A DNA stretch of 64,000 bases from Neoechinorhynchus agilis (GCA_051530055.1 CM121341.1:372001-436000), one strand, 5' to 3'; shown: positions 12,612 to 48,700, counted from the stretch's first letter. Notes: generated from the sequence alone by a model not told the origin. A program made the numbers and translations.

Positions 12612-15600
12612 CGCTGTTCAACCGTTGAGTCTAATGTTTCGGGGTTTCACTTGATAAAATATGGAGTATTTTTTAAGTAAAAGTAAAAATTTGAATTTCT
12701 ACGTCCACTTTTGGACAACGAAAACGCAGGACTTGGATAGAATATACTTTATAACTTTCATATGGATCTTTAAAAAGTCATCACTGAATCGATTGCTCGC
12801 TGTTCAACCGTTGAGTCTAATGTTTCGGGGTTTCACTTGATAAATATGGAGCATTTTTTAAGTAAAGAAAAAATTTGAATTTCTACGTCCACTTTTGGAC
12901 AACGAAAACGCAGGACTTGGATAGAATATACTTTATAACTTTCATATGGATCTTTAAAAAGCCGATCACTGAATCGATTGCTCGCTGTTCAACCGTTGAG
13001 TCTAATGTTTCGGGGTTTCACTTGATAAAATACGGAGTATTTTTTAAGTAAAAGTAAAAATTTGAATTTTTACGTCCATTTTCCGATAACGAAAACGCTG
13101 GACTTGGATAGAATATACTTTATAACTTTCATATGGATCTTTAAAAAGTCGATCACTGAACTATTGCTCGCTGTTTAACCGTTGAGTCTAATGTTTCGGG
13201 GTTTCACTTGATAAAATATGGAGCATTTTTTAAGTAAAAGAAAAAATTTGAATTCTGTCCACTTTTGGACAACGAAAACGCAGGACTTGGATAGAATATA
13301 CTTTATAACTTTCATATGGATCTTTAAGAAAGTCCATCACTGAATCGATTGCTCGCTGTTCAACCGTTGAGTCTAATGTTTCGGGGTTTCACTTGATTAA
13401 ATATGGGGCATTTTTTAAGTAAAAGAAAAAATTTGAATTTTTACGTCCATTTTCCGATAACGAAAACGCAGGACTTGGATAGAATATACTTTATAACTTT
13501 CATATGGATCTTTAAAAAGTCGATCACTGAATCTATTGCTCGCTGTTTAACCGTTGAGTCTAATGTTTCGGGGTTTAACTTGATTAAATATGGGGCATTT
13601 TTTAAGTAAAAGAAAAAATTTGAATTTTTACGTCCATTTTCCAATAACGAAAACGCAGGACTTGGATAGAATATACATTATAACTTTCATATGGATCTTT
13701 AAAAAGCCGATCACTGAATCGATTGCTCGCTGTTCAACCGTTGAGTCTAATGTTTCGGGGTTTCACTTGATAAAATATGGAGTATTTTTTAAGTAAAAGA
13801 AAAAATTTGAATTTCTACGTCCACTTTTGGACAACGAAAACGCAGGACTTGGATAGAATATACTTTATAACTTTCATATGGATCTTTAAGAAAGTCCATC
13901 ACTGAATCGATTGCTCGCTGTTAAACCGTTGAGTCTAATGTTTCGGGGTTTCACTTGATAAAATATGGAGCATTTTTTAAGTAAAAGAAAAAATTTGAAT
14001 TTCTACGTCCACTTTTGGACAACGAAAACGCAGGACTTGGATAGAATATACTTTATAACTTTCATATGGATCTTTAAGAAAGTCCATCACTGAATCGATT
14101 GCTCGCTGTTAAACCGTTGAGTCTAATGTTTCGGGGTTTCACTTGATAAAATATGGAGCATTTTTTAAGTAAAAGAAAAAATTTGAATTTCTACGTCCAC
14201 TTTTGGACAACGAAAACGCTGGACTTGGATAGAATATACTTTATAACTTTCATATGGATCTTTAAGAAAGTCGATCACTGAATCGATTGCTCGCTGTTAA
14301 ACCGTTGAGTCTAATGTTTCGGGGTTTCACTTGATAAAATATGGAGCATTTTTTAAGTAAAAGAAAAAATTTGAATTTCTACGTCCACTTTTGGACAACG
14401 AAATCGCTGGACTTGGATAGAATATACTTTATAACTTTCATATGGATCTTTAAAAAGTCGATCACTGAATCGATTGCTCGCTGTTTAACCGTTGAGTCTA
14501 ATGTTTCGGGGTTTCACTTGATAAAATACGGAGTATTTTTTAAGTAAAAGTAAAAATTTGAATTTCTACGTCCACTTTTGGACAACGAAAACGCAGGACT
14601 TGGATAGAATATACTTTATAACTTTCATATGGATCTTTAAAAAGTCGATCACTGAATCGATTGCTCGCTGTTAAACCGTTGAGTCTAATGTTTCGGGGTT
14701 TCACTTGATAAAATACGGAGTATTTTTTAAGTAAAAGTAAAAATTTGAATTTTTACGTCCATTTTCCGATAACGAAAACGCTGGACTTGGATAGAATATA
14801 CTTTATAACTTTCATATGGATCTTTAAGAAAGTCCATCACTGAATCGATTGCTCGCTGTTAAACCGTTGAGTCTAATGTTTCGGGGTTTCACTTGATAAA
14901 ATATGGAGCATTTTTTAAGTAAAAGAAAAAATTTGAATTTCTACGTCCACTTTTGGACAACGAAAACGCTGGACTTGGATAGAATATACTTTATAACTTT
15001 CATATGGATCTTTAAAAAGTCGATCACTGAATCGATTGCTCGCTGTTCAACCGTTGAGTCTAATGTTTCGGGGTTTCACTTGATAAAATATGGAGCATTT
15101 TTTAAGTAAAAGAAAAAATTTGAATTTCTACGTCCACTTTTGGACAACGAAAACGCAGGACTTGGATAGAATATACTTTATAACTTTCATATGGATCTTT
15201 AAAAAGTCGATCACTGAATCGATTGCTCGCTGTTCAACCGTTGAGTCTAATGTTTCGGGGTTTCACTTGATAAAATATGGAGCATTTTTTAAGTAAAAGA
15301 AAAAATTTGAATTTCTACGTCCACTTTTGGACAACGAAAACGCAGGACTTGGATAGAATATACTTTATAACTTTCATATGGATCTTTAAAAAGTCGATCA
15401 CTGAATCGATTGCTCGCTGTTCAACCGTTGAGTCTAATGTTTCGGGGTTTCACTTGATATACGGAGTATTTTTTAAGTAAAAGTAAAAATTTGAATTTTT
15501 ACGTCCACTTTTGGACAACGAAAACGCAGGACTTGGATAGAATATACTTTATAACTTTCATATGGATCTTTAAGAAAGTCCATCACTGAATCGATTGCTC

Positions 15601-18600
15601 GCTGTTCAACCGTTGAGTCTAATGTTTCGGGGTTTCACTTGATAAAATACGGAGTATTTTTTAAGTAAAAGTAAAAATTTGAATTTTTACGTCCATTTTC
15701 CGATAACGAAAACGCAGGACTTGAGAATATACTTTATAACTTTCATATGGATCTTTAAAAAGTCGATCACTGAATCTATTGCTCGCTGTTTAACCGTTGA
15801 GTCTAATGTTTCGGGGTTTCACTTGATAAAATACGGAGTATTTTTTAAGTAAAGTAAAAATTTGAATTTTTACGTCTACTTTTGAACAACGAAAAAGCGG
15901 GACTTGGATAGAATATACTTTATAACTTTCATATGGATCTTTAAAAAGCCGATCACTGAATCGATTGCTCGCTGTTAAACCGTTGAGTCTAATGTTTCGG
16001 GGTTTCACTTGATAAAATATGGAGCATTTTTTAAGTAAAAGAAAAAATTTGAATTTCTACGTCCACTTTTGGACAACGAAAACGCAGGACTTGGATAGAA
16101 TATACTTTATAACTTTCATATGGATCTTTAAGAAAGCCGATCACTGAATCGATTGCTCGCTGTTTAACCGTTGAGTCTAATGTTTCGGGGTTTCACTTGA
16201 TAAAATATGGCGCATTTTTTAAGTAAAAGAAAAAATTTGAATTTTTACGTCCATTTTCCGATAACGAAAACGCAGGACTTGGATAGAATATACTTTATAA
16301 CTTTCATATGGATCTTCAAAAAAGCCGATCACTGAATCGATTGCTCGCTGTTAAACCGTTGAGTCTAATGTTTCGGGGTTTCACTTGATAAAATATGGAG
16401 TATTTTTTAAGTAAAAGAAAAAATTTGAATTTCTACGTCCACTTTGGGACAAGGAAAACGCAGGACTTGGATAGAATATACTTTATAACTTTCATACGGA
16501 TCTTTAAAAAGCCGATCACTGAATCGATTGCTCGCTGTTTATCCGTTGAGTCTAATGTTTCTGGGTTTCACTTGATAAAATATGGAGCATTTTTTAAGTA
16601 AAAGAAAAAATTTGAATTTCTACGTCAACTTTTTGACAACCGAAACGCTGGACTTGGATAAAATATACTTTATAACTTTCATACGGATCTTTAAAAGCCG
16701 ATCACTGAATCGATTGCTCGCTGTTTAACCGTTGAGTCTAATGTTTCGGGGTTTCACTTGATAAAATATGGAGCATTTTTTAAGTAAAAGAAAAAATTTG
16801 AATTTCTACGTCCACTTTTTGACAACGAAAACGCTGGACTTGGATAGAATATACTTTATAACTTTCATATGGATCTTTAAAAAGCCGATCACTGAATCGA
16901 TTGCTCGCTGTTCAACCGTTGAGTCTAATGTTTCGGGGTTTCACTTGATAAAATATGGAGCATTTTTTAAGTAAAAGAAAAAAATTTGAATTTCTACGTC
17001 CACTTTTGGACAACGAAAACGCAGGACTTGGATAGAATATACTTTATACCTTTCATATGGATCTTTAAGAAAGCCGATCACTGAATCGATTGCTCGCTGT
17101 TCAACCGTTGAGTCTAATGTTTTGGGGTTTCACTTAAAAATATGAAGCATTTTTTAAGTAAAAGAAAAAATTTGAATTTCTACGTCCACTTTTGGACAAC
17201 GAAAACGCAGGACTTGGATAGAATATACTTTATAACTTTCATATGGATCTTTAAGAAAGCCGATCACTGAATCGATTGCTCGCTGTTAAACCGTTGAGTC
17301 TAATGTTTCGAGGTTTCACTTGATAAAATATGGAGCATTTTTTAAGTAAAAGAAAAAATTTGAATTTCTACGTCCACTTTTGGACAAGGAAAACGCTGGA
17401 CTTGGATAGAATATACTTTATAACTTTCATATGGATCTTTAAAAAGCCGATCACTGAATCGATTGCTCGCTGTTTAACCGTTGAGTCTAATGTTTCGGGG
17501 TTTCACTTGATAAAATATGGAGCATTTTTTAAGTAAAAGAAAAAATTTGAATTTCTACGTCCACTTTTGGACAACGAAAACGCAGGACTTGGATAGAATA
17601 TACTTTATAACTTTCATATGGATCTTTAAAAAGCCGATCACTGAATCGATTGCTCGCTGTTCAACCGTTGAGTCTAATGTTTCGGGGTTTCACTTGATAA
17701 AATATGGAGCATTTTTTAAGTAAAAGAAAAAATTTGAATTTTTACGTCCATTTTCCGATAACGAAAACGCAGGACTTGGATAGAATATACTTTATAACTT
17801 TCATATGGATCTTTAAGAAAGCCGATCACTGAATCGATTGCTCGCTGTTTAACCGTTGAGTCTAATGTTTCGGGGTTTCACTTGATAAAATATGGCGCAT
17901 TTTTTAAGTAAAAGAAAAAATTTGAATTTTTACGTCCATTTTCCGATAACGAAAACGCAGGACTTGGATAGAATATACTTTATAACTTTCATATGGATCT
18001 TTAAAAAAGCCGATCACTGAATCGATTGCTCGCTGTTAAACCGTTGAGTCTAATGTTTCGGGGTTTCACTTGATAAAATATGGAGAATTTTTTAAGTAAA
18101 AGAAAAAATTTGAATTTCTACGTCCACTTTTGGACAACGAAATCGCTGGACTTGGATAGAATATACTTTATAACTTTCATATGGATCTTTAAGAAAGCCG
18201 ATCACTGAATCGATTGCTCGCTGTTAAACCGTTGAGTCTAATGTTTCGGGGTTTCACTTGATAAAATATGGAGCATTTTTTAAGTAAAAGAAAAAATTTG
18301 AATTTCTACGTCCACTTTTGGACAACGAAATCGCTGGACTTGGATAGAATATACTTTATAACTTTCATATGGATCTTTAAAAAGCCGATCACTGAATCGA
18401 TTGCTCGCTGTTCAACCGTTGAGTCTAATGTTTCGGGGTTTCACTTGATAAAATATGGAGCATTTTTTAAGTAAAGGAAAAAATTGAATTTCTACGTCCA
18501 CTTTTGGACAACGAAAACGCTGGACTTGGATAGAATATACTTTATAACTTTCATATGGATCTTTAAAAAGTCGATCACTGAATCGATTGCTCGCTGTTCA

Positions 18601-21600
18601 ACCGTTGAGTCTAATGTTTCGGGGTTTCACTTGATAAAATACGGAGTATTTTTTAAGTAAAAGTAAAAATTTGAATTTCTACGTCCACTTTTGGACAACG
18701 AAAACGCAGGACTTGGATAGAATATACTTTATAACTTTCATATGGATCTTTAAAAAGCCGATCACTGAATCGATTGCTCGCTGTTCAACCGTTGAGTCTA
18801 ATGTTTCGGGGTTTCACTTGATAAAATATGGAGCATTTTTTAAGTAAAAGAAAAATTTGAATTTCTACGTCCACTTTTGGACAACGAAAACGCAGGACTT
18901 GGATAGAATATACTTTATAACTTTCATATGGATCTTTAAGAAAGTCCATCACTGAATCGATTGCTCGCTGTTTAACCGTTGAGTCTAATGTTTCGGGGTT
19001 TCACTTGATAAAATACGGAGTATTTTTTAAGTAAAAGTAAAAATTTGAATTTCTACGTCCACTTTTGGACAACGAAAACGCAGGACTTGGATAGAATATA
19101 CTTTATAACTTTCATATGGATCTTTAAAAAGCCGATCACTGAATCGATTGCTCGCTGTTCAACCGTTGAGTCTAATGTTTCGGGGTTTCACTTGATAAAA
19201 TACGGAGTATTTTTTAAGTAAAAGTAAAAATTTGAATTTTTACGTCCATTTTCCGATAACGAAAACGCAGGACTTGGATAGAATATACTTTATAACTTTC
19301 ATATGGATCTTTAAAAAGTCGATCACTGAATCTATTGCTCGCTGTTTAACCGTTGAGTCTAATGTTTCGGGGTTTCACTTGATAAAATACGGAGTATTTT
19401 TTAAGTAAAGTAAAAATTTGAATTTTTACGTCTACTTTTGAACAACGAAAACGCGGGACTTGGATAGAATATACTTTATAACTTTCATATGGATCTTTAA
19501 AAAGTCGATCACTGAATCGATTGCTCGCTGTTAAACCGTTGAGTCTAATGTTTCGGGGTTTCACTTGATAAAATATGGAGCATTTTTTAAGTAAAAGAAA
19601 AAATTTGAATTTCTACGTCCACTTTTGGACAACGAAAACGCAGGACTTGGATAGAATATACTTTATAACTTTCATATGGATCTTTAAGAAAGCCGATCAC
19701 TGAATCGATTGCTCGCTGTTCAACCGTTGAGTCTAATGTTTCGGGGTTTCACTTGATAAAATATGGAGCATTTTTTAAGTAAAGAAAAAATTTGAATTTT
19801 TACGTCCATTTTCCGATAACGAAAACGCAGGACTTGGATAGAATATACTTTATAACTTTCATATGGATCTTTAAAAAGCCGATCACTGAATCGATTGCTC
19901 GCTGTTAAACCGTTGAGTCTAATGTTTCGGGGTTTCACTTGATAAAATACGGAGTATTTTTTAAGTAAAAGAAAAAATTTGAATTTCTACGTCCACTTTG
20001 GGACAAGGAAAACGCAGGACTTGGATAGAATATACTTTATAACTTTCATACGGATCTTTAAAAAGCCGATCACTGAATCGATTGCTCGCTGTTTATCCGT
20101 TGAGTCTAATGTTTCTGGGTTTCACTTGATAAAATATGGAGCATTTTTTAAGTAAAAGAAAAAATTTGAATTTCTACGTCAACTTTTTGACAACCGAAAC
20201 GCTGGACTTGGATAAAATATACTTTATAACTTTCATACGGATCTTTAAAAAGCCGATCACTGAATCGATTGCTCGCTGTTTATCCGTTGAGTCTAATGTT
20301 TCTGGGTTTCACTTGATAAAATATGGAGCATTTTTTAAGTAAAAGAAAAAATTTGAATTTCTACGTCAACTTTTTGACAACCGAAACGCTGGACTTGGAT
20401 AAAATATACTTTATAACTTTCGTATGGATCTTTAAAAAGCCGATCATTGAATCGATTGCTCGCTGTTCAACCGTCGAGTCTAATGTTTCGGGGTTTCACT
20501 TGATAAAATATGGAGCATTTTTTAAGTAAAAGAAAAAATTTGAATTTCTACGTCTACTTTTGGACAACGAAAACGCAGGACTTGGATAGAATATACTTTA
20601 TACCTTTCATATGGATCTTTAAGAAAGCCGATCACTGAATCGATTGCTCGCTGTTCAACCGTTGAGTCTAATGTTTTGGGGTTTCACTTAATAAAATATA
20701 AAGCATTTTTTAAGTAAAAGAAAAAATTTGAATTTCTACGTCCACTTTTGGACAACGAAAACGCAGGACTTGGATAGAATATACTTTATAACTTTCAAAT
20801 GGATCTTTAAGAAAGCCGATCACTGAATCGATTGCTCGCTGTTAAACCGTTGAGTCTAATGTTTCGAGGTTTCACTTGATAAAATATGGAGCATTTTTTT
20901 AAGTAAAAGAAAAAATTTGAATTTCTACGTTCACTTTTGGACAAGGAAAACGCTGGACTTGGATAAAATATACTTTATAACTTTCATATGGATCTTTAAA
21001 AAGCCGATCACTGGATCGATTGCTCGCTGTTTATCCGTTGAGTCTAATGTTTCGGGGTTTCACTTGATAAAATATGGAGCATTTTTTAAGTAAAAGAAAA
21101 AATTTGAATTTCTACGTCCACTTTTGGACAACGAAAACGCAGGACTTGGATAGAATATACTTTATAACTTTCATATGGATCTTTAAAAAGCCGATCACTG
21201 AATCGATTGCTCGCTGTTCAACCGTTGAGTCTAATGTTTCGGGGTTTCACTTGATAAAATATGGAGCATTTTTTAAGTAAAGGAAAAAATTTGAATTTTT
21301 ACGTCCATTTTCCGATAACGAAAACGCAGGACTTGGATAGAATATAATTTATAACTTTCATATGGATCTTTAAGAAAGCCGATCACTGAATCGATTGCTC
21401 GCTGTTTAACCGTTGAGTCTAATGTTTCGGGGTTTCACTTGATAAAATATGGCGCATTTTTTAAGTAAAAGAAAAAATTTGAATTTTTACGTCCATTTTC
21501 CGATAACGAAAAAGCGGGACTTGGATAGAATATACTTTATAACTTTCATATGGATCTTCAAAAAAGCCGATCACTGAATCGATTGCTCGCTGTTAAACCG

Positions 21601-22198
21601 TTGAGTCTAATGTTTCGGGGTTTCACTTGATAAAATATGGAGAATTTTTTAAGTAAAAGAAAAAATTTGAATTTCTACGTCCACTTTTGGACAACGAAAT
21701 CGCTGGACTTGGATAGAATATACTTTATAACTTTCAAATGGATCTTTAAGAAAGCCGATCACTGAATCGATTGCTCGCTGTTAAACCGTTGAGTCTAATG
21801 TTTCGGGGTTTCACTTGATAAAATATGGAGCATTTTTTAAGTAAAAGAAAAAATTTGAATTTCTACGTCCACTTTTGGACAACGAAATCGCTGGACTTGG
21901 ATAGAATATACTTTATAACTTTCATATGGATCTTTAAAAAGCCGATCACTGAATCGATTGCTCGCTGTTCAACCGTTGAGTCTAATGTTTCGGGGTTTCA
22001 CTTGATAAAATATGGAGCATTTTTTAAGTAAAAGAAAAAATTTGAATTTCTACGTCCACTTTTGGACAACGAAAACGCAGGACTTGGATAGAATATACTT
22101 TATAACTTTCATATGGATCTTTAAAAAGTCGATCACTGAATCGATTGCTCGCTGTTAAACCGTTGAGTCTAATGTTTCGGGGTTTCACTTGATAAAAT
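12612..22198. repeat. Satellite A: tandem array of 187-bp monomers, about 51 copies
   Basis: Repeated spurious ORFs start at 14903, 15090 and 15277 (period 187). The monomer is A/T-tract rich with small hairpins GTCCA-CTTT-TGGAC and TCAA-CCG-TTGA. No spacers, no HHR core on either strand. Confidence 0.98.
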
Positions 22199-25034: not shown

Positions 25035-25053
25035 TCTCCAGTCCCTGCTTTAA

Positions 25054-28000
25054 CCGGAAAAGGTTTTGGTTTTTTCTTATCCGAGATTCTGATCACAGCA
25101 TCTCAAATTCCACCTTCCTAAAGGATTTTCTCAGGATGATGTTTAAGATTGGGGATGCGGTGATCATAATCCTCGTGATAAAATATTTAAACTAGATATT
25201 CAGGTATTCCGCGAGGAAGCCTCGTCTCTTAATTCACCGGAAAAGGTTTTAGTTTTTCTTATCCGAGATTCTGATCACAGCATCTCAAATTCCACCTTCC
25301 TAAAGGATTTTCTCAGGATGATGTTTAAGATTGGGGATGCGGTGATCATAATCCTTGTGATAAAATATTTAAACTAGATATTCAGGTATTCCGCGAGGAA
25401 GCCTCGTCTCTTAATTCACCGGAAAAGGTTTTAGTTTTTTCTTATCCGAGATTCTGATCACAGCATCTCAAATTCCACCTTCCTAAAGGATTTTCTCAGG
25501 ATGATGTTTAAGATTGGGGATGCGGTGATCATAATCCTCGTGATAAAATATTTAAACTAGATATTCAGGTATTCCGCGAGGAAGCCTCGTCTCTTAATTC
25601 ACCGGAAAAGGTTTTAGTTTTTTCTTATCCGAGATTCTGATCACAGCATCTCAAATTCCACCTTCCTAAAGGATTTTCTCAGGATGATGTTTAAGATTGG
25701 GGATGCGGTGATCATAATCCTCGTGATAAAATATTTAAACTAGATATTCAGATATTACGCGAGGAAGCCTCGTCTCTTAATTCACCGGAAAAGGTTTTAG
25801 TTTTTTCTTATCCGAGATTCTGATCACTGTATCTCAAATTCCACCTCCCTAAAGGATTTTCTCAGGATGATGTTTAAGATTGGGGATGCGGTGATCATAA
25901 TCCTTGTGATAAAATATTTAAACTAGATATTCAGGTATTCCGCGAGGAAGCCTCGTCTCTTAATTCACCGGAAAAGGTTTTAGTTTTTCTTATCCGAGAT
26001 TCTGATCACAGCATCTCAAATTCCACCTTCCTAAAGGATTTTCTCAGGATGATTTTTAAGATTGGGGATGCGGTGATCATAATCCTCGTGATAAAATATT
26101 TAAACTAGATATTCAGGTATTCCGCGAGGAAGCCTCGTCTCTTAATTCACCGGAAAAGGTTTTAGTTTTTTCTTATCCGAGATTCTGATCACAGCATCTC
26201 AAATTCCACCTTCCTAAAGGATTTTCTCAGGATGATGTTTAAGATTGGGGATGCGGTGATCATAATCCTCGTGATAAAATATTTAAACTAGATATTCAGG
26301 TATTCCGCGAGGAAGCCTCGTCTCTTAATTCACCGGAAAAGGTTTTAGTTTTTTCTTATCCGAGATTCTGATCACTGTATCTCAAATTCCACCTTCCTAA
26401 AGGATTTTCTCAGGATGATGTTTAAGATTGGGGATGCGGTGATCATAATCCTCGTGATAAAATATTTAAACTAGATATTCAGATATTACGCGAGGAAGCC
26501 TCGTCTCTTAATTCACCGGAAAAGGTTTTAGTTTTTTCTTATCCGAGATTCTGATCACAGCATCTCAAATTCCACCTTCCTAAAGGATTTTCTCAGGATG
26601 ATTTTTAAGATTGGGGATGCGGTGATCATAATCCTCGTGATAAAATATTTAAACTAGATATTCAGATATTACGCGAGGAAGCCTCGTCTCTTAATTCACC
26701 GGAAAAGGTTTTAGTTTTTTCTTATCCGAGATTCTGATCACAGCATCTCAAATTCCACCTTCCTAAAGGATTTTCTCAGGATGATGTTTAAGATTGGGGA
26801 TGCGGTGATCATAATCCTCGTGATAAAATATTTAAACTAGATATTCAGATATTACGCGAGGAAGCCTCGTCTCTTAATTCACCGGAAAAGGTTTTGGTTT
26901 TTCTTATCCGAGATTCTGATCACAGCATCTAAATTCCACCTTCCTAAAGGATTTTCTCAGGATGATGTTTAAGATTGGGGATGCGGTGATCATAATCCTG
27001 TGATAAAATATTTAAACTAGATATTCAGGTATTCCGCGAGGAAGCCTCGTCTCTTATTCACGGAAAAGGTTTGTTTTTTCTTATCGAGATTCTGATCACA
27101 GCATCTCAAATTCCACCTTCCTAAAGGATTTTCTCAGGATGATGTTTAAGATTGGGGATGCGGTGATCATAATCCTCGTGATAAAATATTTAAACTAGAT
27201 ATTCAGGTATTCCGCGAGGAAGCCTCGTCTCTTAATTCACCGGAAAAGGTTTTAGTTTTTCTTATCCGAGATTCTGATCACAGCATCTCAAATTCCACCT
27301 TCCTAAAGGATTTTCTCAGGATGATGTTTAAGATTGGGGATGCGGTGATCATAATCCTTGTGATAAAATATTTAAACTAGATATTCAGGTATTCCGCGAG
27401 GAAGCCTCGTCTCTTAATTCACCGGAAAAGGTTTTAGTTTTCTTATCCGAGATTCTGATCACTGTATCTCAAATTCCACCTTCCTAAAGTTTTCTCAGGA
27501 TGATTTTAAGATTGGGGATGCGGTGATCATAATCCTCGTGATAAAATATTTAAACTAGATATTCAGATATTACGCGAGGAAGCCTCGTCTCTTAATTCAC
27601 CGGAAAAGGTTTTAGTTTTTTTATCCGAGATTTGATCACAGCATCTCAAATTCCACCTTCCTAAAGGATTTTCTCAGGATGATGTTTAAGATTGGGGATG
27701 GTGATCATAATCCTTGTGATAAAATATTTAAACTAGATATTCAGGTATTCCGCGAGGAAGCCTCGTCTCTTAATTCACCGGAAAAGGTTTTTGTTTTTCT
27801 TATCCGAGATTCTGATCACAGCATCTCAAATTCCACCTCCCTAAAGGATTTTCTCAGGATGATGTTTAAGATTGGGGATGCGGTGATCATAATCCTTGTG
27901 ATAAAATATTTAAACTAGATATTCAGGTATTCCGCGAGGAAGCCTCGTCTCTTAATTCACCGGAAAAGGTTTTAGTTTTTTCTTATCCGAGATTCTGATC

Positions 28001-31000
28001 ACAGCATCTCAAATTCCACCTTCCTAAAGGATTTTCTCAGGATGATGTTTAAGATTGGGGATGCGGTGATCATAATCCTTGTGATAAAATATTTAAACTA
28101 GATATTCAGATATTACGCGAGGAAGCCTCGTCTCTTAATTCACCGGAAAAGGTTTTGGTAAGAAGCCTCGTCTCTTAATTCACCGGAAAAGGTTTTAGTT
28201 TTTCTTATCCGAGATTCTGATCACAGCATCTCAAATTCCACCTTCCTAAAGGATTTTCTCAGGATGATGTTTAAGATTGGGGATGCGGTGATCATAATCC
28301 TCGTGATAAAATATTTAAACTAGATATTCAGGTATTCCGCGAGGAAGCCTCGTCTCTTAATTCACCGGAAAAGGTTTTAGTTTTTCTTATCCGAGATTCT
28401 GATCACAGCATCTCAAATTCCACCTTCCTAAAGGATTTTCTCAGGATGATGTTTAAGATTGGGGATGCGGTGATCATAATCCTTGTGATAAAATATTTAA
28501 ACTAGATATTCAGATATTACGCGAGGAAGCCTCGTCTCTTAATTCACCGGAAAAGGTTTTGGTTTTTTCTTATCCGAGATTCTGATCACAGCAAGCCTCG
28601 TCTCTTAATTCACCGGAAAAGGTTTTGTTTTTCTTATCCGAGATTCTGATCACAGCATCTCAAATTCCACCTTCCTAAAGGATTTTCTCAGGATGATGTT
28701 TAAGATTGGGGATGCGGTGATCATAATCCTCGTGATAAAATATTTAAACTAGATATTCAGGTATTCCGCGAGGAAGCCTCGTCTCTTAATTCACCGGAAA
28801 AGGTTTTAGTTTTTCTTATCCGAGATTCTGATCACAGCATCTCAAATTCCACCTTCCTAAAGGATTTTCTCAGGATGATTTTAAGATTGGGGATGCGGTG
28901 ATCATAATCCTTGTGATAAAATATTTAAACTAGATATTCAGATATTACGCGAGGAAGCCTCGTCTCTTAATTCACCGGAAAAGGTTTTAGTTTTTCTTAT
29001 CCGAGATTCTGATCACAGCATCTCAAATTCCACCTTCCTAAAGGATTTTCTCAGGATGATGTTTAAGATTGGGGATGCGGTGATCATAATCCTTGTGATA
29101 AAATATTTAAACTAGATATTCAGATATTACGCGAGGAAGCCTCGTCTCTTAATTCACCGGAAAAGGTTTTAGTTTTTTCTTATCCGAGATTCTGATCACA
29201 GCATCTCAAATTCCACCTTCCTAAAGGATTTTCTCAGGATGATGTTTAAGATTGGGGATGCGGTGATCATAATCCTCGTGATAAAATATTTAAACTAGAT
29301 ATTCAGGTATTCCGCGAGGAAGCCTCGTCTCTTAATTCACCGGAAAAGGTTTTAGTTTTTTCTTATCCGAGATTCTGATCACAGCATCTCAAATTCCACC
29401 TTCCTAAAGGATTTTCTCAGGATGATGTTTAAGATTGGGGATGCGGTGATCATAATCCTTGTGATAAAATATTTAAACTAGATATTCAGGTATTACGCGA
29501 GGAAGCCTCGTCTCTTAAGTCACCGGAAAAGGTTTTAGTTTTTTCTTATCCGAGATTCTGATCACAGCATCTCAAATTCCACCTTCCTAAAGGATTTTCT
29601 CAGGATGATGTTTAAGATTGGGGATGCGGTGATCATAATCCTCGTGATAAAATATTTAAACTAGATATTCAGGTATTCCGCGAGGAAGCCTCGTCTCTTA
29701 ATTCACCGGAAAAGGTTTTAGTTTTTCTTATCCGAGATTCTGATCACAGCATCTCAAATTCCACCTTCCTAAAGGATTTTCTCAGGATGATTTTTAAGAT
29801 TGGGGATGCGGTGATCATAATCCTCGTGATAAAATATTTAAACTAGATATTCAGATATTACGCGAGGAAGCCTCGTCTCTTAATTCACCGGAAAAGGTTT
29901 TAGTTTTTTCTTATCCGAGATTCTGATCACTGCATCTCAAATTCCACCTTCCTAAAGGATTTTCTCAGGATGATGTTTAAGATTGGGGATGCGGTGATCA
30001 TAATCCTTGTGATAAAATATTTAAACTAGATATTCAGATATTACGCGAGGAAGCCTCGTCTCTTAATTCACCGGAAAAGGTTTTAGTTTTTTCTTATCCG
30101 AGATTCTGATCACAGCATCTCAAATTCCACCTTCCTAAAGGATTTTCTCAGGATGATGTTTAAGATTGGGGATGCGGTGATCATAATCCTCGTGATAAAA
30201 TATTTAAACTAGATATTCAGATATTACGCGAGGAAGCCTCGTCTCTTAATTCACCGGAAAAGGTTTTATTTTTTTCTTATCCGAGATTCTGATCACTGTA
30301 TCTCAAATTCCACCTTCCTAAAGGATTTTCTCAGGGTGATGTTTAAGATTGGGGATGCGGTGATCATAATCCTTGTGATAAAAATATTTAAACTAGATAT
30401 TCAGATATTACGCTACGAAGCCTCGTCTCTTAATTAACCGGAAAAGGTTTTGGTTTTTTCTTATCCGAGATTCTGATCACAGCATCTCAAATTCCACCTT
30501 CCTAAAGGATTTTCTCAGGATGATGTTTAAGATTGGGGATGCGGTGATCATAATCCTCGTGATAAAATATTTAAACCAGATATTCAGGTATTCCGCGAGG
30601 AAGCCTCGTCTCTTAGTTCACCGGAAAAGGTTTTAGTTTTTCTTATCCGAGATTCTGATCACAGCATCTCAAATTCCACCTTCCTAAAGGATTTTCTCAG
30701 GATGATGTTTAAGATTGGGGATGCGGTGATCATAATCCTCGTGATAAAATATTTAAACTAGATATTCAGGTATTCCGCGAGGAAGCCTCGTCTCTTAATT
30801 CACCGGAAAAGGTTTTGGTTTTTTCTTATCCGAGATTCTGATCACAACCTCGTCTCTTAATTCACCGGAAAAGGTTTTTGTTTTTCTTATCCGAGATTCT
30901 GATAACAGCATCTCAAATTCCACCTTCCTGAAGGATTTTCTCAGGATGATGTTTAAGATTGGGGATGCGGTGATCATAATCCTCGTGATAAAATATTTAA

Positions 31001-34000
31001 ACTAGATATTCAGGTATTCCGCGAGGAAGCTTCGTCTCTTAATTCACCGGAAAAGGTTTTAGTTTTTTCTTATCCGAGATTCTGATCACAGCATCTCAAA
31101 TTCCACCTTCCTAAAGGATTTTCTCAGGATGATGTTTAAGATTGGGGATGCGGTGATCATAATCCTTGTGATAAAAATATTTAAACTAGATATTCAGATA
31201 TTACGCTACGAAGCCTCGTCTCTTAATTCACCGGAAAAGGTTTTGGTTTTTTCTTATCCGAGATTCTGATCACAGCATCTCAAATTCCACCTTCCTAAAG
31301 GATTTTCTCAGGATGATTTTTAAGATTGGGGATGCGGTGATCATAATCCTCGTGATAAAATATTTAAACTAGATATTCAGATATTACGCGAGGAAGCCTC
31401 GTCTCTTAATTCACCGGAAAAGGTTTTGGTTTTTTCTTATCAGAGATTCTGATCACAGCAAGCCTCGTCTCTTAAGTCACCGGAAAAGGTTTTAGTTTTT
31501 TCTTATCCGAGATTCTGATCACTGTATCTCCCACTCCACCTTCCTAAAGGATTTTCTCAGGATGATGTTTAAGATTGGGGATGCGGTGATCATAATCCTC
31601 GTGATAAAATATTTAAACTAGATATTCAGGTATTCCGCGAGGAAGCCTCGTCTCTTAATTCACCGGAAAAGGTTTTAGTTTTTCTTATCCGAGATTCTGA
31701 TCACAGCATCTCCCACTCCACCTTCCTAATGGATTTTCTCAGGATGATTTTTAAGATTGGGGATGCGGTGATCATAATCCTTGTGATAAAATATTTAAAC
31801 CAGATATTCAGGTATTCCGCGAGGAAGCCTCGTCTCTTAGTTCACCGGAAAAGGTTTTAGTTTTTTCTTATCCGAGATTCTGATCACTGTATCTCAAATT
31901 CCACCTTAATAAAGGATTTTCTCCGGATGATGTTTAAGATTGGGGATGCGGTGATCATAATCCTCGTGATAAAATATTTAAACCAGATATTCAGGTATTC
32001 CGCGAGGAAGCCTCGTCTCTTAGTTCACCGGAAAAGGTTTTAGTTTTTCTTATCCGAGATTCTGATCACAGCATCTCCCACTCCACCTCCCTAAAGGATT
32101 TTCTCAGGATGATGTTTAAGATTGGGGATGCGGTGATCATAATCCTTGTGATAAAATATTTAAACTAGATATTCAGGTATTCCGCGAGGAAGCCTCGTCT
32201 CTTAATTCACCGGAAAAGGTTTTAGTTTTTTCTTATCCGAGATTCTGATCACAGCATCTCAAATTCCACCTTCCTAAAGGATTTTCTCAGGATGATGTTT
32301 AAGATTGGGGATGCGGTGATCATAATCCTTGTGATAAAATATTTAAACTAGATATTCAGGTATTCCGCGAGGAAGCCTCGTCTCTTAATTCACCGGAAAA
32401 GGTTTTAGTTTTTTCTTATCCGAGATTCTGATAACAGCATCTCAAATTCCACCCTCCTAAAGGATTTTCTCAGGATGATGTTTAAGATTGGGGATGCGGT
32501 GATCATAATCCTCGTGATAAAATATTTAAACTAGATATTCAGGTATTGCGCGAGGAAGCCTCGTCTCTTAAGTCACCGGAATAGGTTTTAGTTTTTTCTT
32601 ATCCGAGATTCTGATCACAGTATCTCCCACTCCACCTCCCTAAAGGATTTTCTCAGGATGATGTTTAAGATTGGGGATGCGGTGATCATAATCCTTGTGA
32701 TAAAATATTTAAACTAGATATTCAGGTATTCCGCGAGGAAGCCTCGTCTCTTAATTCACCGGAAAAGGTTTTAGTTTTTCTTATCCGAGATTCTGATCAC
32801 AGCATCTCAAATTCCACCTTCCTAAAGGATTTTCTCAGGATGATTTTTAAGATTGGGGATGCGGTGATCATAATCCTCGTGATAAAATATTTAAACTAGA
32901 TATTCAGGTATTCCGCGAGGAAGCCTCGTCTCTTAATTCACCGGAAAAGGTTTTAGTTTTTTCTTATCCGAGATTCTGATCACAGCATCTCAAATTCCAC
33001 CTTCCTAAAGGATTTTCTCAGGATGATGTTTAAGATTGGGGATGCGGTGATCATAATCCTCGTGATAAAATATTTAAACTAGATATTCAGGTATTCCGCG
33101 AGGAAGCCTCGTCTCTTAATTCACCGGAAAAGGTTTTAGTTTTTTCTTATCCGAGATTCTGATCACAGCATCTCAAATTCCACCTTCCTAAAGGATTTTC
33201 TCAGGATGATGTTTAAGATTGGGGATGCGGTGATCATAATCCTCGTGATAAAATATTTAAACTAGATATTCAGATATTACGCGAGGAAGCCTCGTCTCTT
33301 AATTCACCGGAAAAGGTTTTAGTTTTTTCTTATCCGAGATTCTGATCACAGCATCTCAAATTCCACCTTCCTAAAGGATTTTCTCAGGATGATGTTTAAG
33401 ATTGGGGATGCGGTGATCATAATCCTCGTGATAAAATATTTAAACTAGATATTCAGATATTACGCGAGGAAGCCTCGTCTCTTAATTCACCGGAAAAGGT
33501 TTTAGTTTTTTCTTATCCGAGATTCTGATCACAGCATCTCAAATTCCACCTTCCTAAAGGATTTTCTCAGGATGATGTTTAAGATTGGGGATGCGGTGAT
33601 CATAATCCTCGTGATAAAATATTTAAACTAGATATTCAGATATTACGCGAGGAAGCCTCGTCTCTTAATTCACCGGAAAAGGTTTTAGTTTTTTCTTATC
33701 CGAGATTCTGATCACAGCATCTCAAATTCCACCTTCCTAAAGGATTTTCTCAGGATGATGTTTAAGATTGGGGATGCGGTGATCATAATCCTCGTGATAA
33801 AATATTTAAACTAGATATTCAGGTATTACGCGAGGAAGCCTCGTCTCTTAATTCACCGGAAAAGGTTTTAGTTTTTCTTATCCGAGATTCTGATCACAGC
33901 ATCTCAAATTCCACCTTCCTAAAGGATTTTCTCAGGATGATGTTTAAGATTGGGGATGCGGTGATCATAATCCTTGTGATAAAATATTTAAACTAGATAT

Positions 34001-35950
34001 TCAGGTATTCCGCGAGGAAGCCTCGTCTCTTAATTCACCGGAAAAGGTTTTAGTTTTTTCTTATCCGAGATTCTGATCACTGTATCTCAAATTCCACCTT
34101 CCTAAAGGATTTTCTCAGGATGATGTTTAAGATTGGGGATGCGGTGATCATAATCCTTGTGATAAAATATTTAAACTAGATATTCAGGTATTCCGCGAGG
34201 AAGCCTCGTCTCTTAATTCACCGGAAAAGGTTTTAGTTTTTCTTATCCGAGATTCTGATCACAGCATCTCAAACTCCACCTTCCTAAAGGATTTTCTCAG
34301 GATGATTTTTAAGATTGGGGATGCGGTGATCATAATCCTTGTGATAAAATATTTAAACTAGATATTCAGATATTACGCGAGGAAGCCTCGTCTCTTAATT
34401 CACCGGAAAAGGTTTTGGTAAGCCTCGTCTCTTAATTCACCGGAAAAGGTTTTGTTTTTCTTATCCGAGATTCTGATCACAGCATCTCAAATTCCACCTT
34501 CCTAAAGGATTTTCTCAGGATGATGTTTAAGATTGGGGATGCGGTGATCATAATCCTTGTGATAAAATATTTAAACTAGATATTCAGATATTACGCGAGG
34601 AAGCCTCGTCTCTTAATTCACCGGAAAAGGTTTTAGTTTTTTCTTATCCGAGATTCTGATCACAGCATCTCAAATTCCACCTTCCTAAAGGATTTTCTCG
34701 GGATGATTTTTAAGATTGGGGATGCGGTGATCATAATCCTCGTGATAAAATATTTAAACTAGATATTCAGGTATTCCGCGAGGAAGCCTCGTCTCTTAAT
34801 TCACCGGAAAAGGTTTTAGTTTTTCTTATCCGAGATTCTGATCACAGCATCTCCCACTCCACCTTCCTAAAGGATTTTCTCGGGATGATTTTTAAGATTG
34901 GGGATGCGGTGATCATAATCCTTGTGATAAAATATTTAAACTAGATATTCAGGTATTCCGCGAGGAAGCCTCGTCTCTTAATTCACCGGAAAAGGTTTTA
35001 GTTTTTCTTATCCGAGATTCTGATCACAGCATCTCAAATTCCACCTTCCTAAAGGATTTTCTCAGGATGATTTTTAAGATTGGGGATGCGGTGATCATAA
35101 TCCTTGTGATAAAATATTTAAACTAGATATTCAGATATTACGCGAGGAAGCCTCGTCTCTTAATTCACCGGAAAAGGTTTTGTTTTTTCTTATCCGAGAT
35201 TCTGATCACAGCATCTCAAATTCCACCTTCCTAAAGGATTTTCTCAGGATGATGTTTAAGATTGGGGATGCGGTGATCATAATCCTCGTGATAAAATATT
35301 TAAACTAGATATTCAGATATTACGCGAGGAAGCCTCGTCTCTTAAGTCACCGGAAAAGGTTTTAGTTTTTTCTTATCCGAGATTCTGATCACAGCATCTC
35401 GAATTCCACCTTCCTAAAGGATTTTCTCAGGATGATGTTTAAGATTGGGGATGCGGTGATCATAATCCTCGTGATAAAATATTTAAACTAGATATTCAGG
35501 TATTCCGCGAGGAAGCCTCGTCTCTTAATTCACCGGAAAAGGTTTTAGTTTTTCTTATCCGAAATTCTGATCACAGCATCTCCCACTCCACCTCCCTAAA
35601 GGATTTTCTCAGGATGATTTTTAAGATTGGGGATGCTGTGATCATAATCCTTATGATAAAAGTATTTAAACAAGATATTCAGATATTACGCGAGGCAGCC
35701 TCGTCTCTTAAGTAACCGGAAAAGGTTTTAGTTTTTCTTATCCGAAATTCTGATCACAGCATCTCCCACTCCACCTCCCTGAAGCATTTTCTCAGGATGA
35801 TGTTTAAGATTGGGGATGCGGTGGTCATAATCCTCGTGATAAAATATTTAAACTAGATATTCAGATAATACGCGAGGAAGCCTCGTCTCTTAATTCACCG
35901 GAAAAGGTTTTAGTTTTATCTTATCCGAGATTCTGATCACAGCATCTCCA
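25054..35950. repeat. Satellite B: tandem array of 182/183-bp monomers, about 60 copies, with an internal fold-back
   Basis: ccggaaaagg recurs at 25054, 25237, 25419 and 25602. Internal inverted repeat gattctgatcacagcatc / gatgcggtgatcataatc (16/18), extending outward, plus hairpin CGAGG-AAG-CCTCG. Confidence 0.98.
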
Positions 35951-36831
35951 AATCTACGAAAGGCTTGACGTTCATTTCTCAACGACGATAGAAGCTCGAT
36001 GTGTTTCTTCTGCTCCAAAAGGGAAGTAACGTTGCATAAAACCAAAGAGTTTTAAAATGGTATTGCCTATCGTTCGGCCGTAGTTTAGAATTTTATTTTA
36101 TATTTGTGATTTGGTTTTTGAGGCATTTTCACGGGTTTTTATAAGGGTGTTGATCACTTGTCTTTGAGACTCGCTCAAAGGTTCCTTTCAAAAGTATCTA
36201 TTGAGATTCGATCAAACTTCTTGTATTAAATCTTAAAACTTAAATTTTATGGTATTTTTAGGCTCTATCGATCTGAGATGCAATAGATGGCCAGTGAAAT
36301 CTAAGAATTTAGTATTATTAAAGAAACAGCTTAAAGGGTGGTGGTTTTAGAGTTGAAATAGCACTTTAATTTGTGACAAAATTTCGTACATTCTGCCTAT
36401 GCCACATTATTACAGAAATTGAGAATCGAAATATTATTGCCGTTGCTAATATTCGTTTAGTGGCGTGATTGTAAACTTGGATTGCACGCTTTACATTATT
36501 TTGCACTTTGGAGATATTTGCCCTTCAATGTTCATCGTGTTTATAATATCGATAGAGTTTCGTCGGTTATAGAACTTTTGCTATTTATTTGTTCACTTGA
36601 TTTGTAGGTCTCACGAATATTATCCATTTATTCCCCCCCGCGACTTTTAAAAGGCGGTTGAAACATCAAGTTGCGATGCTTTTCGACAATTTTGGAAAAA
36701 ACAGCCTTAAAAATAGATTTTTTTCCCTTAGTTTTTGCGAAATTCTCCGTCAAGTTTAAGCAAGCACGTAAATTGGAAATCATCCTGGATTCCACGAATT
36801 TTTATTGGAAATCTAAAGAAATATATTTAGC

Positions 36832-36976
36832 TATGGATTGTGCTGATCATAATTGCCCGGATAAAACGTATTTTATTAGATTGAAATATTTGGCGGAAAG
36901 CTGATGAAGCTTTCTGTTTGGAACTATTTCAATAAAATATGTTTTATCCGTGGAATTATGATCACCACAATTCATA
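36832..36976. mobile_element. Fold-back (inverted) pLTR-like fragment with a degenerate hammerhead, satellite-C family
   Basis: Arms tatggattgtgctgatcataattgcccggataaaacgtattttatt and aataaaatatgttttatccgtggaattatgatcaccacaattcata are near reverse complements. The centre reads CTGATGA (36901-36907)...GAAC TAT T TCAATAAAATA, versus satellite C GAAA TAT T TCAATAAAATA. Confidence 0.75.
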
Positions 36977-37109
36977 CCGTTTCACCCCAAAGGATTTTCT
37001 CTCAAAGATATTAAATGTTAAAAAAGGGGCAAATAATCGATAGTTTTGAAAATCGATTCGTTTCTTCTTAAATATAAATGTTCTGGCATTTCCATTCATT
37101 GCTTCTAGA

Positions 37110-38087
37110 ATGATGCCGCTGGTACTACGTACCGATGAAGTGGCACGAATTTTAGAATCGTTTGACGACAGAATCTTAAGGTCGAGTAATCCTTTTCAGT
37201 TGGATTTCGAGAGTGTAATAGATGGAATCAAAAATTTGAAAGGGGTTAAAAAGGAAGATTTTATCTCATGTGCACGACTGATTGAGCTCGCGAGCAAGAT
37301 ATACAGCAAGCGGATCGATTCCTTGATGACCTTAGTTACAAAAGTGGCTTTTGTTCAAGGACCTGTAGAAGAAGTTCGTGCAAGTTCACCGCCTATAAAA
37401 CGACCAAAAACAAGGATTTCAAGGAAATCTACACTTATCCCATTAAGGGGCAATCACATAAAAGAGTCGAAACAAAGACCCGCCGCCAATTATGGACGTG
37501 TTATGGCCAAACATCGTATTATCTGCGATTCTGAGCTTCGGTTTATGTACGGCCGCTTTTTGAGTCCGGATAGCGAACGTTTGCAATGTACGGAAGGTCT
37601 GCTAAGTCCAGTGAAGGTTCAGCAGATCTTTGGAACAATATTCGCTAGTCATGGAAAATACCTTCGCCTTAAGGAGCGCCGCATAAAGAGTCGTCAAAAG
37701 ACTTCGTTTCCAAAAGATCTTACTGCCTATCATAAACTGAATAAGAGAAGGCGGATTGTAGAATTGAAAGAAGATACTATCAATATTCATCAAGAATCGA
37801 ATTTCGATGACCCAATGAACGTAAATGACCTAACGAGACGAATCTCGGAAATGTACAAGAATAATCGCAACAGTGCAAGTTTCGAAATGACGAAATGCGG
37901 AATTAGCACCACTTTTACTTGCTCAATGAGTGACTTTTATGATTCGATGAGTGCTCACGAAGGTCCGCCTTCCGTGAGTGTGATGCTAATGGCTATTCTT
38001 TTAATGATCGAATCGATGGACGAAAAGGTCAGCCTCAGGCAAACAGATGATTTAACTGATGTGATTATCGAACAAGAATTCCTATAA
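37110..38087 (+). CDS. Short, divergent condensin I kleisin (CAP-H/Barren-like), intronless, 325 aa
   Basis: N-terminal SNPFQLDF...DFISCARLIELASKIYSKRIDSL...VTKV resembles the CAP-H NAFxL...FxxAxxTLDAxxKIYxxRVD motif. C-terminal SVSVMLMAILLMI...DDLTDVIIEQ resembles the CAP-H winged-helix end. Confidence 0.72.
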   Translation: MMPLVLRTDEVARILESFDDRILRSSNPFQLDFESVIDGIKNLKGVKKEDFISCARLIELASKIYSKRIDSLMTLVTKVAFVQGPVEEVRASSPPIKRPKTRISRKSTLIPLRGNHIKESKQRPAANYGRVMAKHRIICDSELRFMYGRFLSPDSERLQCTEGLLSPVKVQQIFGTIFASHGKYLRLKERRIKSRQKTSFPKDLTAYHKLNKRRRIVELKEDTINIHQESNFDDPMNVNDLTRRISEMYKNNRNSASFEMTKCGISTTFTCSMSDFYDSMSAHEGPPSVSVMLMAILLMIESMDEKVSLRQTDDLTDVIIEQEFL

Positions 38088-44049: not shown

Positions 44050-44273
44050 GCAATTGGAATTATTGTTTAAGTCTACGCCCTGTAAATGATTATTTATTAA
44101 AGACGTTTCGAACCTCATCGGGTTATCGATAGAGTCTATTACTAACAAACAAAGTGATGATGAACCCGACGAGGTTCGTAACGTCTTTAATAAATAATCA
44201 TTTGCGGGGTGTAGACCTAAACAATAATTCTAATCACATTCCCCGGTACCTCACATATCGACATCAAGCAATT
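44050..44273. mobile_element. 212-bp fold-back pLTR-like insertion with hammerhead remnants and a 6-bp target duplication
   Basis: GCAATT at 44050-44055 and 44268-44273. Inverted arms at about 44053-44124 and 44163-44234, then a 33-nt unique tail. Removing the insert plus one TSD restores the knuckle KCLNCGINHKAYDSRC. Confidence 0.85.
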
Positions 44274-44565: not shown

Positions 44566-45480
44566 CCGTCCTCGCTTCGCTCGGAACCTCGACGCTAGAC
44601 CACAATTTGAAGACGAAAACTTGCCCGCCCAAGACGAGCCAAGTGAAAAGACCAAGGACCTCGATGGCTTAGAGGTGCAGCACATTTTTCCACATCTTTC
44701 GTCGAGTCAAATCTATCTCCGATATGTGGATGATGTGCTGCTGACCTACCACGAGGATAGTGAGGTCGACACAATCGAAGAACAGTTAAATTCAATGGAT
44801 TTAGCAGGTCGCATCAAGGTTACTCGGGATAAGCCACACACGTTGCGACAATGCAAATTAAAAGCGCGAGTCGTCCACAGGATAGGGCCATCACTCAGAC
44901 AGATTTTGACTCAGACCGAGCACCACGAGGATCAAAATGATTGTCCGAGGTCATGTTTGATGTGCTCCCATTGTAGCCCTTCAAGGAACGAAGAAGTACG
45001 CCTCCTCAGACAGTCTTGCCAATCAATATGCGTGTTATATAGGATGCTGTGCCGGCTATGCAAGGACGAAGGGCGGACAACGTTCTACATTGGCAAGACG
45101 GAAAGAGCATTACGTTCACGTGTGACGGAACACGTGCGTAATGCGCGCAATCCGACGGCTCCGTCATACCGATCGACCACATGGGCTACCCATTTCGCTA
45201 CCTCTCACGTTGGTGCCAACCCAACCTTCGAGATTGAGGTGATGCACAAGGCATCCGATCTTGTGGATCTCTTGATTGCCGAGGCGCTATGCATTAATCG
45301 TAGGGGAGTAGTGGGATTGGGTGGGGTTGCGAACAGCAGGGACAGACACAACGAGGCAGAGGGCTTGCTCAATAAGAGGGATGAGCTGACGGACAGCGTT
45401 ACCTTCCTCCGATCCTTTTCAGATCACCGAAGGGAAGCTCCCTGACGAAGACGCAGGCGTCGAAAATTTGGAGTATTAAG
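44566..45480 (+). mobile_element. Internally deleted Penelope-like element (RT YVDD fragment, Cys-rich linker, GIY-YIG endonuclease)
   Basis: IYLRYVDDVLL...RIKVT, then a jump to GPSLRQIL, CPRSCLMC, then VLYRMLCRLCK...FYIGKTERALRSRVTEHVR...LLIAEALCIN...LLNKRDE. The Cys-rich linker before GIY-YIG is typical of the Neptune group (clade call tentative). Confidence 0.88.
45437..45474 (+). ncRNA. Minimal type I hammerhead ribozyme overlapping the PLE stop codon
   Basis: GCTCC (stem I), CTGACGA (45442-45448), A, GACG-CAGG-CGTC (stem II), GAAA, A-T-T (AAUU palindromic stem III), T17, GGAGT (stem I'). The ORF's TGA is 45443-45445. Confidence 0.85.
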
Positions 45481-48115: not shown

Positions 48116-48209
48116 AACTAAAAATCTTTTTGTTTGGAGCTTTAATTTTGAAGTAATTTAGAATTATTGTTTAGGTCACGCATTTTGAGCATCTTTTTTA
48201 ATAACTGGC

Positions 48210-48253
48210 AAACTGATGATGAACCCGATGAGGTTCGCAGAACGTCTTTAATT
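48210..48253 (+). ncRNA. Degenerate hammerhead motif (ACGU-palindrome family)
   Basis: AAA CTGATGA T GAACC-CGATGA-GGTTC gcagaa CGT C TTT. The GAAA is disrupted. Near-identical to the motifs at 44110-44190. Confidence 0.7.
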
Positions 48254-48264
48254 GAAAATATTAT

Positions 48265-48700
48265 TTACCAGGTGAAGAATTGTTGACAAGTCCATTTGGA
48301 AGTCTTTGAATCCAACGCGACACAATCTTGTTTGTATTTTCCTGTGCAAACAAACTTGATAAATGCGTACACGATTGTACCTTCAATAACTTCATCTTTT
48401 TCCGCCATAAAGATCTTCTTCATGTTGCTTGTAAGTTTTTTCAGCAACCTCAACAAATCCGACAAGAGACGGATGAAATATTTTTGAATTAATAAATCAA
48501 TCTTTATTCTTCTCATCAAACCAAAGAACACATAAATGAACAATTTCTTTACAAAAATCTTACTATTGATATCGATTGACGTGGACTCTTCAACGCACGG
48601 ATTGATATTTGACCAAAACGCAACCTTCTTTATCATTACAATGTCCGCACGGCACATTTTAGAACCAATTTTTAGCGCTAACAAAAATCTCCATTGGTTT
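48265..48700 (-). pseudogene. Decayed coding fragment, possibly a DNA-transposase C-terminus (P-element/THAP9-like)
   Basis: Frame-broken pieces VPCGHCND, HPSLVGFVEVAEKTYK and KIVSRWIQRL loosely resemble CxxC...PSxxv...aExxfr. Shares 23/25 nt with the interior of the MITE at 49078-49102. Confidence 0.25.

Follow-up and report, generated by a model that had tools for sequence, protein, structure and literature searches.

The 64,000-nucleotide stretch of Neoechinorhynchus agilis DNA analyzed here (GCA_051530055.1, CM121341.1:372001-436000, hereafter the window) contains three satellite arrays, found with Tandem Repeats Finder (TRF), and two dispersed fold-back elements. Satellite A lies at 12611-22198 (187 bp, 51 copies, 95% matches), satellite B at 25053-35953 (period 183, 59 copies) and satellite C at 55120-63281 on the minus strand (period 245, 33 copies); consensus monomers were built from 55 (A), 19 (B) and 9 (C) units. 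The plus strand of B is called "sense" according to the orientation of the tail described below. The dispersed elements, referred to as D36 and D48, each consist of a fold-back and a tail: D36 occupies 36832-37010 (+), with a fold-back of 145 nt that extends to 36976, and D48 occupies 48730-48950 (+), with a fold-back of 178 nt that extends to 48907. We are concerned with satellite B and with its relation to satellite C, whose units carry a hammerhead-type motif. A first-pass annotation had proposed that B is the same ribozyme unit as C with the catalytic CUGAUGA box deleted, that both satellites arose from one family of hammerhead-bearing pseudo-long terminal repeats (pLTR), and that B was amplified after the loss of the ribozyme, either at the DNA level or as a cleavage-dead passenger RNA.

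The similarity between B and C is beyond chance. In Smith-Waterman local alignments of consensus dimers, evaluated against 500 dinucleotide shuffles with satellite A as the negative control, the same-strand comparison of B and C scores 29, versus 18.3±2.3 for the null (z=4.8), and none of the 500 shuffles reaches 29. The opposite-strand comparison of B and C and both comparisons that involve satellite A remain at the null level. With nhmmer, the C unit retrieves B (E=3.9e-5), the B arms retrieve C (E=7.6e-6), and a profile made from D36 and D48 alone retrieves B (E=2.7e-6) and C (E=9.2e-7), satellite A being matched only at E=8.1. The stretch of similarity covers about 80-95 nt, running downstream as had been claimed. 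The alignment made by hand in the first-pass annotation is exact in its count (25 matches over 31 positions) and in the strings it quotes: that of C is present in the C consensus, and those of B occur 20 times (GTAATATC) and 30 times (the variant GGAATACC).

It could be argued that B and C only look alike because two AT-rich repeats match by chance: both have a GC content of about 38%, and a direct blastn search with the C consensus against B gives no match at E≤1, so that profile and Smith-Waterman searches were needed. This explanation was tested by the shuffles and is rejected with near certainty. The nhmmer E values are of the order of 1e-5 to 1e-6 in three independent directions, satellite A is negative, and two sequences bridge the satellites: D36, which matches C (blastn, E=2e-9) as well as B (E=0.02), and the edge unit of the C array, whose arm is in a state that resembles B and D36. 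These comparisons support the view that B and C belong to one repeat family, which also includes D36 and D48.

The B monomer is a fold-back. In the unit at 25105-25286, for instance, a tail, or spacer, of 46 nt (25105-25150, +, AGGATTTTCTC...GATGAT, delimited by an arm-plus-flank alignment) is followed by an inverted 5'-truncated copy (25151-25216, -), whose minus-strand reading is the arm aligned to the C ribozyme unit. Then comes a 3-nt axis (25217-25219), which is the loop AAG/CTT of the perfect palindrome CGAGG-N3-CCTCG, and last a sense copy (25220-25286, +) ending in ...GATCACAGCATCTC, the 3' terminus of the family. The arms are 83% complementary over a 24-nt core and about 75% alike over their whole length up to the axis, which confirms that the monomer has the architecture of the dispersed element at 36832-36976. 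When folded as a circular RNA, the B monomer is rod-like, with a z value of -3.3, versus about 0 (-0.1) for C. The B tail is homologous to the sequence found 3' of the right arm in the dispersed copies (in blastn, positions 98-153 of the B consensus correspond to 37001-36944).

In D36 and D48, a tail of about 45 nt, AGGATTTTCTC...GATGAT, follows one arm only, in the same orientation as the B spacer. Both elements are near-perfect hairpins when folded as linear RNA (z of -11.6 for D36 and -12.5 for D48), and the two arms of a copy are 74.5% identical in D36 and 71.8% in D48 (blastn). The position of the axis relative to the CUGAUGA box varies. In D48 it precedes CTGATGA (48837) by about 12 nt, and the left arm reads CTGATCA. 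In D36 it lies on the box: the loop of the axis, TGATGAA, places CTGATGA at the apex, and GAAA reads GAAC. In B it lies downstream, where the C motif has the loop of stem II. This variability is expected if the inverted copies were 5'-truncated at variable points. Many RNA contigs with different flanks match D36 partially, over the arms only (36856-36970), which indicates that D36 comes from a dispersed family. Some of the contigs that contain D36 arms are very deep (a 335-nt contig has a depth of 299), which indicates that the family also has copies within strongly expressed transcripts from other parts of the genome.

Satellite C consists of 245-bp units in a sense-only tandem. The minus strand of the array contains 30 copies of CTGATGA; CUGAUGA and GAAAUAUU are correctly spaced in 29 of the 34 units, and the exact consensus motif is found in 21 (an example is at about 63196-63245). 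Two sub-variants are seen just 5' of the core, TAGACGA in most units and TGAATGA in four (e.g. 55500-55700); it is the minority form that matches the dispersed copies. At its 5' (minus-strand) end, the array is abutted by an inverted arm fragment (63282-63320, +, nhmmer hit 63217-63318, E=0.0046). The last unit (55117-55149, -) ends at the 3' terminus of the family, and its arm has retained the B/D36-like state (ATGAT..CACCGCAATT) rather than the homogenised C state (in blastn, positions 130-158 of D48 correspond to 55149-55117, 82%, E=0.002).

The minimal hammerheads of Penelope-like elements have no helix III, palindromic positions 15.2/16.2, a short helix I (2 bp in a Drosophila virilis variant), an unpaired nucleotide between A9 and 10.1 and a conserved G10.1-C11.1 pair; they probably act as dimers and their activity in vitro is low (PMC4209133). 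We used a descriptor taken from that study (CUGANGA, an optional unpaired nucleotide, a G-C closed helix II, GAA, A15.1, palindromic 15.2/16.2, U16.1 and H17). In the window, it matches only the C units, D48 and a motif at 45442; it gives 0 matches in 300 first-order random windows of the same composition. The C motif has a helix II of 3 bp (G-C, U.G, A-U), AUAU in the place of helix III, and U at H17; the helix II of D48 is interrupted by a bulge (3+4 bp). The spacer that separates CUGAUGA from GAAAUAUU is variable, both in sequence and in length (11, 13 or 18 nt), while the two boxes are conserved. On these sequence features, we accept that the motif of C and D48 is hammerhead-derived, with the minimal type I layout and an activity that may be weak, and we retain the earlier description of the family as one that carries a hammerhead motif of the Penelope-associated kind.

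Rfam reports no hammerhead, either at the gathering threshold in the whole window or at E≤10 in parts of C and D48, and it scores D36 and D48 only as hairpins that resemble miRNA precursors. We do not hold this silence against a ribozyme; the result is uninformative, as a textbook minimal hammerhead at 45437-45474 likewise goes undetected by Rfam. The latter motif (+) is of the Penelope type: it has a helix I of 5 bp (GCUCC/GGAGU), CUGACGA, an unpaired A, a helix II of 4 bp with a CAGG loop, GAA, palindromic AAUU and U17. The TGA of its CUGACGA is the stop codon of an open reading frame (ORF) at 44621-45445 (274 aa, no Pfam match).

As the first-pass annotation stated, B does not contain CUGAUGA: CTGATGA, the relaxed form CTGA.GA and the U3-A8 variant TTGA.AA are all missing from both strands of 25053-35953. 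At the homologous site, B has GAGACGA (in the example unit, its reverse complement is at 25222-25228, where CUGAUGA would lie). The GAAA box is lost as well, being GGAA in 30 units (25207-25210 in the example unit) and GTAA in 20, so that A13 is replaced. The absence of both boxes supports the conclusion that B has no functional hammerhead core. The U.G pair of stem II does become C-G in B, as had been noticed, but pairing is lost at the adjacent position, where A-U is replaced by U x C.

The idea that B is the ribozyme unit minus CUGAUGA holds insofar as the box is absent and the family is shared, but the clean deletion of 7 nt is one of three histories that score equally and are inseparable here: a substitution in place, a small deletion at the apex, or a truncation whose endpoint lay 3' of the box. 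In the third history, the founder of B may never have held the box, the sequence on the left of the axis being the complement of the other arm.

A single deletion of CUGAUGA between the flanking GA dinucleotides of a C-like unit, followed by amplification, would account for the 25/31 matches of the gapped alignment and for the 9 matches out of 13 that B has upstream of the gap with the majority form of C. Small deletions are plausible at palindrome apices, and the box of D36 lies in the apex loop of the hairpin. However, the anchor of that alignment, AGACGA, is the majority state of C and appears to be derived within C, since AATGA precedes the box in four C monomers, in D48 and in two copies of the family found in RNA contigs; against these AATGA-type copies, the upstream matches are 6/13. 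The placement of the gap is not upheld by either aligner: MAFFT and Smith-Waterman both pair GACGAGG of B with GATGAGG of C, ungapped, which amounts to one CpG-type transition, and the gapped and ungapped placements are within about 1 point of each other (hand count, scoring +2/-3/-5/-2). Complementarity to CCTCG on the other side of the axis is another explanation for the CGA of the anchor. Finally, the GAAA box is also lost, and therefore one deletion does not explain the whole loss. We consider the single deletion rather unlikely, although it deserves some weight.

The B array is made of about 59 units of 182-183 bp, whose spacing is mostly 182-183, and of five partial units. Its edges are sharp and its flanks are not similar to the monomer; a possible likeness of the flanks to the tail or the monomer was rejected as not significant. 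The right edge, at about 35950, falls exactly at the 3' terminus of the family, and the array, read in the sense direction, begins partway through a unit. The 57 full monomers average 96.6% identity and include many pairs without any difference; they fall into two variant types that are mixed in no regular order, for which reason the strict higher-order repeat that a TRF period of 365 might suggest was rejected. The partial units explain the low match (84%) that TRF gives for B, and TRF also returns odd periods of 218-249. These partial units, at 28124-28163 (+, 40 nt), 28528-28593 (66 nt), 30784-30845 (62 nt), 31395-31460 (66 nt) and 34384-34420 (37 nt), all begin exactly after the fold-back axis. 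The apex of the palindrome thus seems, from the sequence, to be a recurrent duplication breakpoint. All five partial units have the GGTTTTGGT variant, which is also found in the edge unit of the array.

The anatomy of the family bears on its origin. Penelope-like elements insert as 5'-truncated copies, often in partial tandem and often next to an inverted 5'-truncated copy, with a one-sided tail of 30-40 bp; their hammerheads are near the 3' end, and hammerhead-bearing Penelope families have been described in an acanthocephalan (PMC8557442). The family described here has the anatomy of Penelope derivatives: an inverted, 5'-truncated copy lies beside a sense copy, there are partial tandems, and a tail of about 45 nt is found on one side only. 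The B and C arrays both end at the arm terminus, and C has an inverted fragment at its upstream end. These observations point to a Penelope-type origin. Of the proposal that a single hammerhead-bearing pLTR family gave rise to both satellites, the common hammerhead family is supported; the term pLTR is drawn from structural hallmarks only, there being no Penelope ORF in the window.

Another possibility is that the family is a DNA transposon of the kind of miniature inverted-repeat transposable elements (MITE), in which case the hammerhead-like boxes would be incidental, and B and C would be ordinary MITE-derived satellites. The near-perfect hairpins of 145-178 nt formed by D36 and D48 (with the z values given above, and miRNA-precursor-like to Rfam) would fit this idea, and fold-back transposons do seed satellites: Tetris in Drosophila virilis is an example (PMC4079207). 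On the contrary, the ends of MITE are fixed, whereas here the position of the axis varies and the one-sided tail makes the arms asymmetric. Nor would a MITE account for the sense-only tandem of C with its single inverted fragment upstream, for a motif that passes the hammerhead descriptor when random sequence never does, or for the conservation of CUGAUGA and GAAAUAUU across a variable spacer. No target-site duplication of at least 8 nt flanks D36, D48, B or C. A MITE is therefore an improbable source, and we continue with the Penelope-type origin.

Regarding the growth of B, the arms of its fold-back differ by about 25%, like those of D36 and D48, while its monomers are 96.6% identical, which implies that the fold-back is much older than the amplification. 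We think it probable that B is the array of a dead hairpin mini-copy, which came from a family of small non-coding repeats bearing hammerheads and grew late, at the DNA level. The founder of B would already have been ribozyme-dead, with no CUGANGA and with GGAA or GUAA as its GAAA box. This old, diverged fold-back copy would have been inserted, probably as a short tandem, and the tandem would then have been expanded and homogenised as DNA by unequal exchange, conversion and segmental duplication. The RNA of B would have no self-cleaving activity and would not be an abundant transcript. We infer this order of events, and the growth as DNA, from the divergence values and from the structure of the array; a short RNA-mediated tandem could still have been the seed of B.

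Transcripts of B were searched for in four Logan contig sets that are putatively RNA (the library type was guessed). Some B words are present in these runs, but depth is only at background: it is 0-9 for B versus 2-7 for the single-copy intergenic flank, and far below the depth of 280-400 of the neighboring gene that starts at 37109, despite the approximately 60 copies of B.

These data are relevant to the second route of amplification that had been envisaged, in which B is a cleavage-dead RNA passenger. Multimeric or circular B RNA, perhaps processed in trans or by host nucleases, would be copied by a Penelope-type reverse transcriptase, and the array would be a rolling-circle cDNA. Such a mechanism would explain an array that starts inside a unit, ends exactly at the 3' terminus of the family and has sharp edges; the rod-like fold of the circular monomer (z=-3.3) and the B words found in putative RNA runs are in keeping with it. 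However, the depth of B in the contigs is that of the intergenic flank in spite of about 60 copies, the interspersed variant types and the recurrent internal partial units point to exchange at the DNA level, and B has no ribozyme core that could produce unit-length RNA. We give this route little chance. Of the two routes, growth as DNA is the better fit, considering the 96.6% identity of the monomers versus about 75% for the arms, the interspersed variants, the partial duplications and the background depth in RNA contigs.

Several observations nevertheless weigh against late DNA-level growth of a dead Penelope-type hairpin. No ORF for a Penelope reverse transcriptase or a GIY-YIG endonuclease was found within the 64-kb window, where Pfam searches on ORFs detect host genes only, nor was any full element that shares the 3' end of the family seen there; the lack of target-site duplications noted above counts against a Penelope-type insertion too. 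In C and D48 alike, the core is not flanked by a helix I of about 4-5 bp: there are just 2 bp in the main C variant, and 3 bp in D48 and in the GAATGA variant that corresponds to the minority form of C. A longer multimer of RNA-mediated origin would also account for a B array that is 5'-truncated at its start and fixed at its 3' end. As for the depth of B in RNA, Logan contigs drop rare and small RNAs and would miss circles that are not polyadenylated, so that they show presence, not absence.

A more speculative idea, to which we attach a low probability, is that the hairpin end-pairs left by Penelope-type integration are a general seed of satellites in this genome, and that B was laid down as well as extended by reverse transcription of a multimeric or circular RNA devoid of ribozyme, a passenger for which self-cleavage would be unnecessary. 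If this were true, the apex of the hairpin would be a defined point of template switching, which would explain why the partial units start at the axis and why the array ends at the 3' terminus of the family.

The hammerheads of the newt, Schistosoma and Dolichopoda satellites are canonical and have been shown to cleave. Like C, these satellites consist of tandem type I units, which probably act as dimers, and C may do so too (PMC2808323, PMC2837043). In the paper on the Dolichopoda satellite pDo500, we found no statement of a ribozyme satellite with a ribozyme-less relative.

The closest likeness of the family motif is to the minimal hammerheads of Penelope elements (Cervera & de la Pena 2014, PMC4209133; Craig et al. 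2021, PMC8557442), with which it shares CUGAUGA, the unpaired nucleotide before a G-C closed helix II, GAA, the palindromic AUAU and the short helix I. The inverted 5'-truncated copies, the one-sided tail and the partial tandems are those of Penelope insertions, and acanthocephalans, the phylum of the host, carry hammerhead-bearing Penelope families. On the other hand, the helix II of C has 3 bp versus the usual 6-8, B is without any hammerhead, and no ORF for a reverse transcriptase or endonuclease, no full element and no target duplication is seen in the window. Dual hammerhead motifs on opposite strands have been described at distances of about 100-700 bp (PMC4209133); the two boxes of the D48 fold-back lie closer together.

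Metazoan non-LTR (long terminal repeat) retrozymes are low-GC tandems of 150-450 bp linked to Penelope pLTRs (Cervera & de la Pena 2020, PMC7229834; Li et al. 2026, preprint, 10.64898/2026.07.22.740005). Satellite C fits this description, with one type I motif in each 245-bp unit. Satellite B has the unit size (183 bp) and the low GC content (about 38%) but not the type I hammerhead in each unit. The defining traits of retrozymes are an active type I hammerhead and abundant linear and circular RNA, whereas B has no ribozyme and is at background in RNA contigs; moreover, retrozyme units have no inverted duplicate, and the B monomer has one.

In the description of Tetris in Drosophila virilis (PMC4079207) and in the review "Satellite DNAs rising from the transposon graveyards" (PMC12628747), we find the same scheme of a dispersed element with inverted arms that supplies a monomer, which is then homogenised as DNA. 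Unlike the satellites of the Tetris type portrayed there, the source here looks like the end-pair of a retroelement rather than a DNA transposon, and the sister satellite, C, keeps the ribozyme motif. The decay of ribozyme repeats is a known theme, as is the seeding of satellites by mobile or fold-back elements, and the initial remark that no description of such a paired family was known was too strong. The window reveals no new mechanism or class of element; B, a dead relative, most likely amplified as DNA, and this fate is ordinary for repeats of the kind.

The interest of the window is that it offers a compact and internally controlled example of the passage from ribozyme-bearing mobile repeats to ordinary satellite DNA. 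Three states stand side by side: C with its minimal hammerhead layout, two hairpins with different truncation points, and B, which would derive from a dead hairpin. The example is useful for the annotation of repeats in acanthocephalans and bears on the question of whether amplification requires the hammerhead; satellite B suggests that DNA-level growth can do without it.

Other features of the window are distinct from this family. Satellite A is unrelated to B and C and has no excess of RNA structure (z of +1.2 to +1.4). A second, unrelated fold-back family is represented at 44050-44273, where the arms are 81% alike, and by a relative at 48158-48281 (E=7e-12); the element at 44050-44273 was considered as a member of the B and C family and rejected, as it matches neither satellite.

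Last, we note that a highly expressed transcript starts at 37109 (+). It contains an ORF at 37110-38087 that codes for 325 aa, with no Pfam match. The same non-genomic 5' extension, ending in ...AAAAACTTGCAAACA, precedes this start in three runs, and a similar variant of it is found in the fourth; the extension may be a trans-spliced leader.

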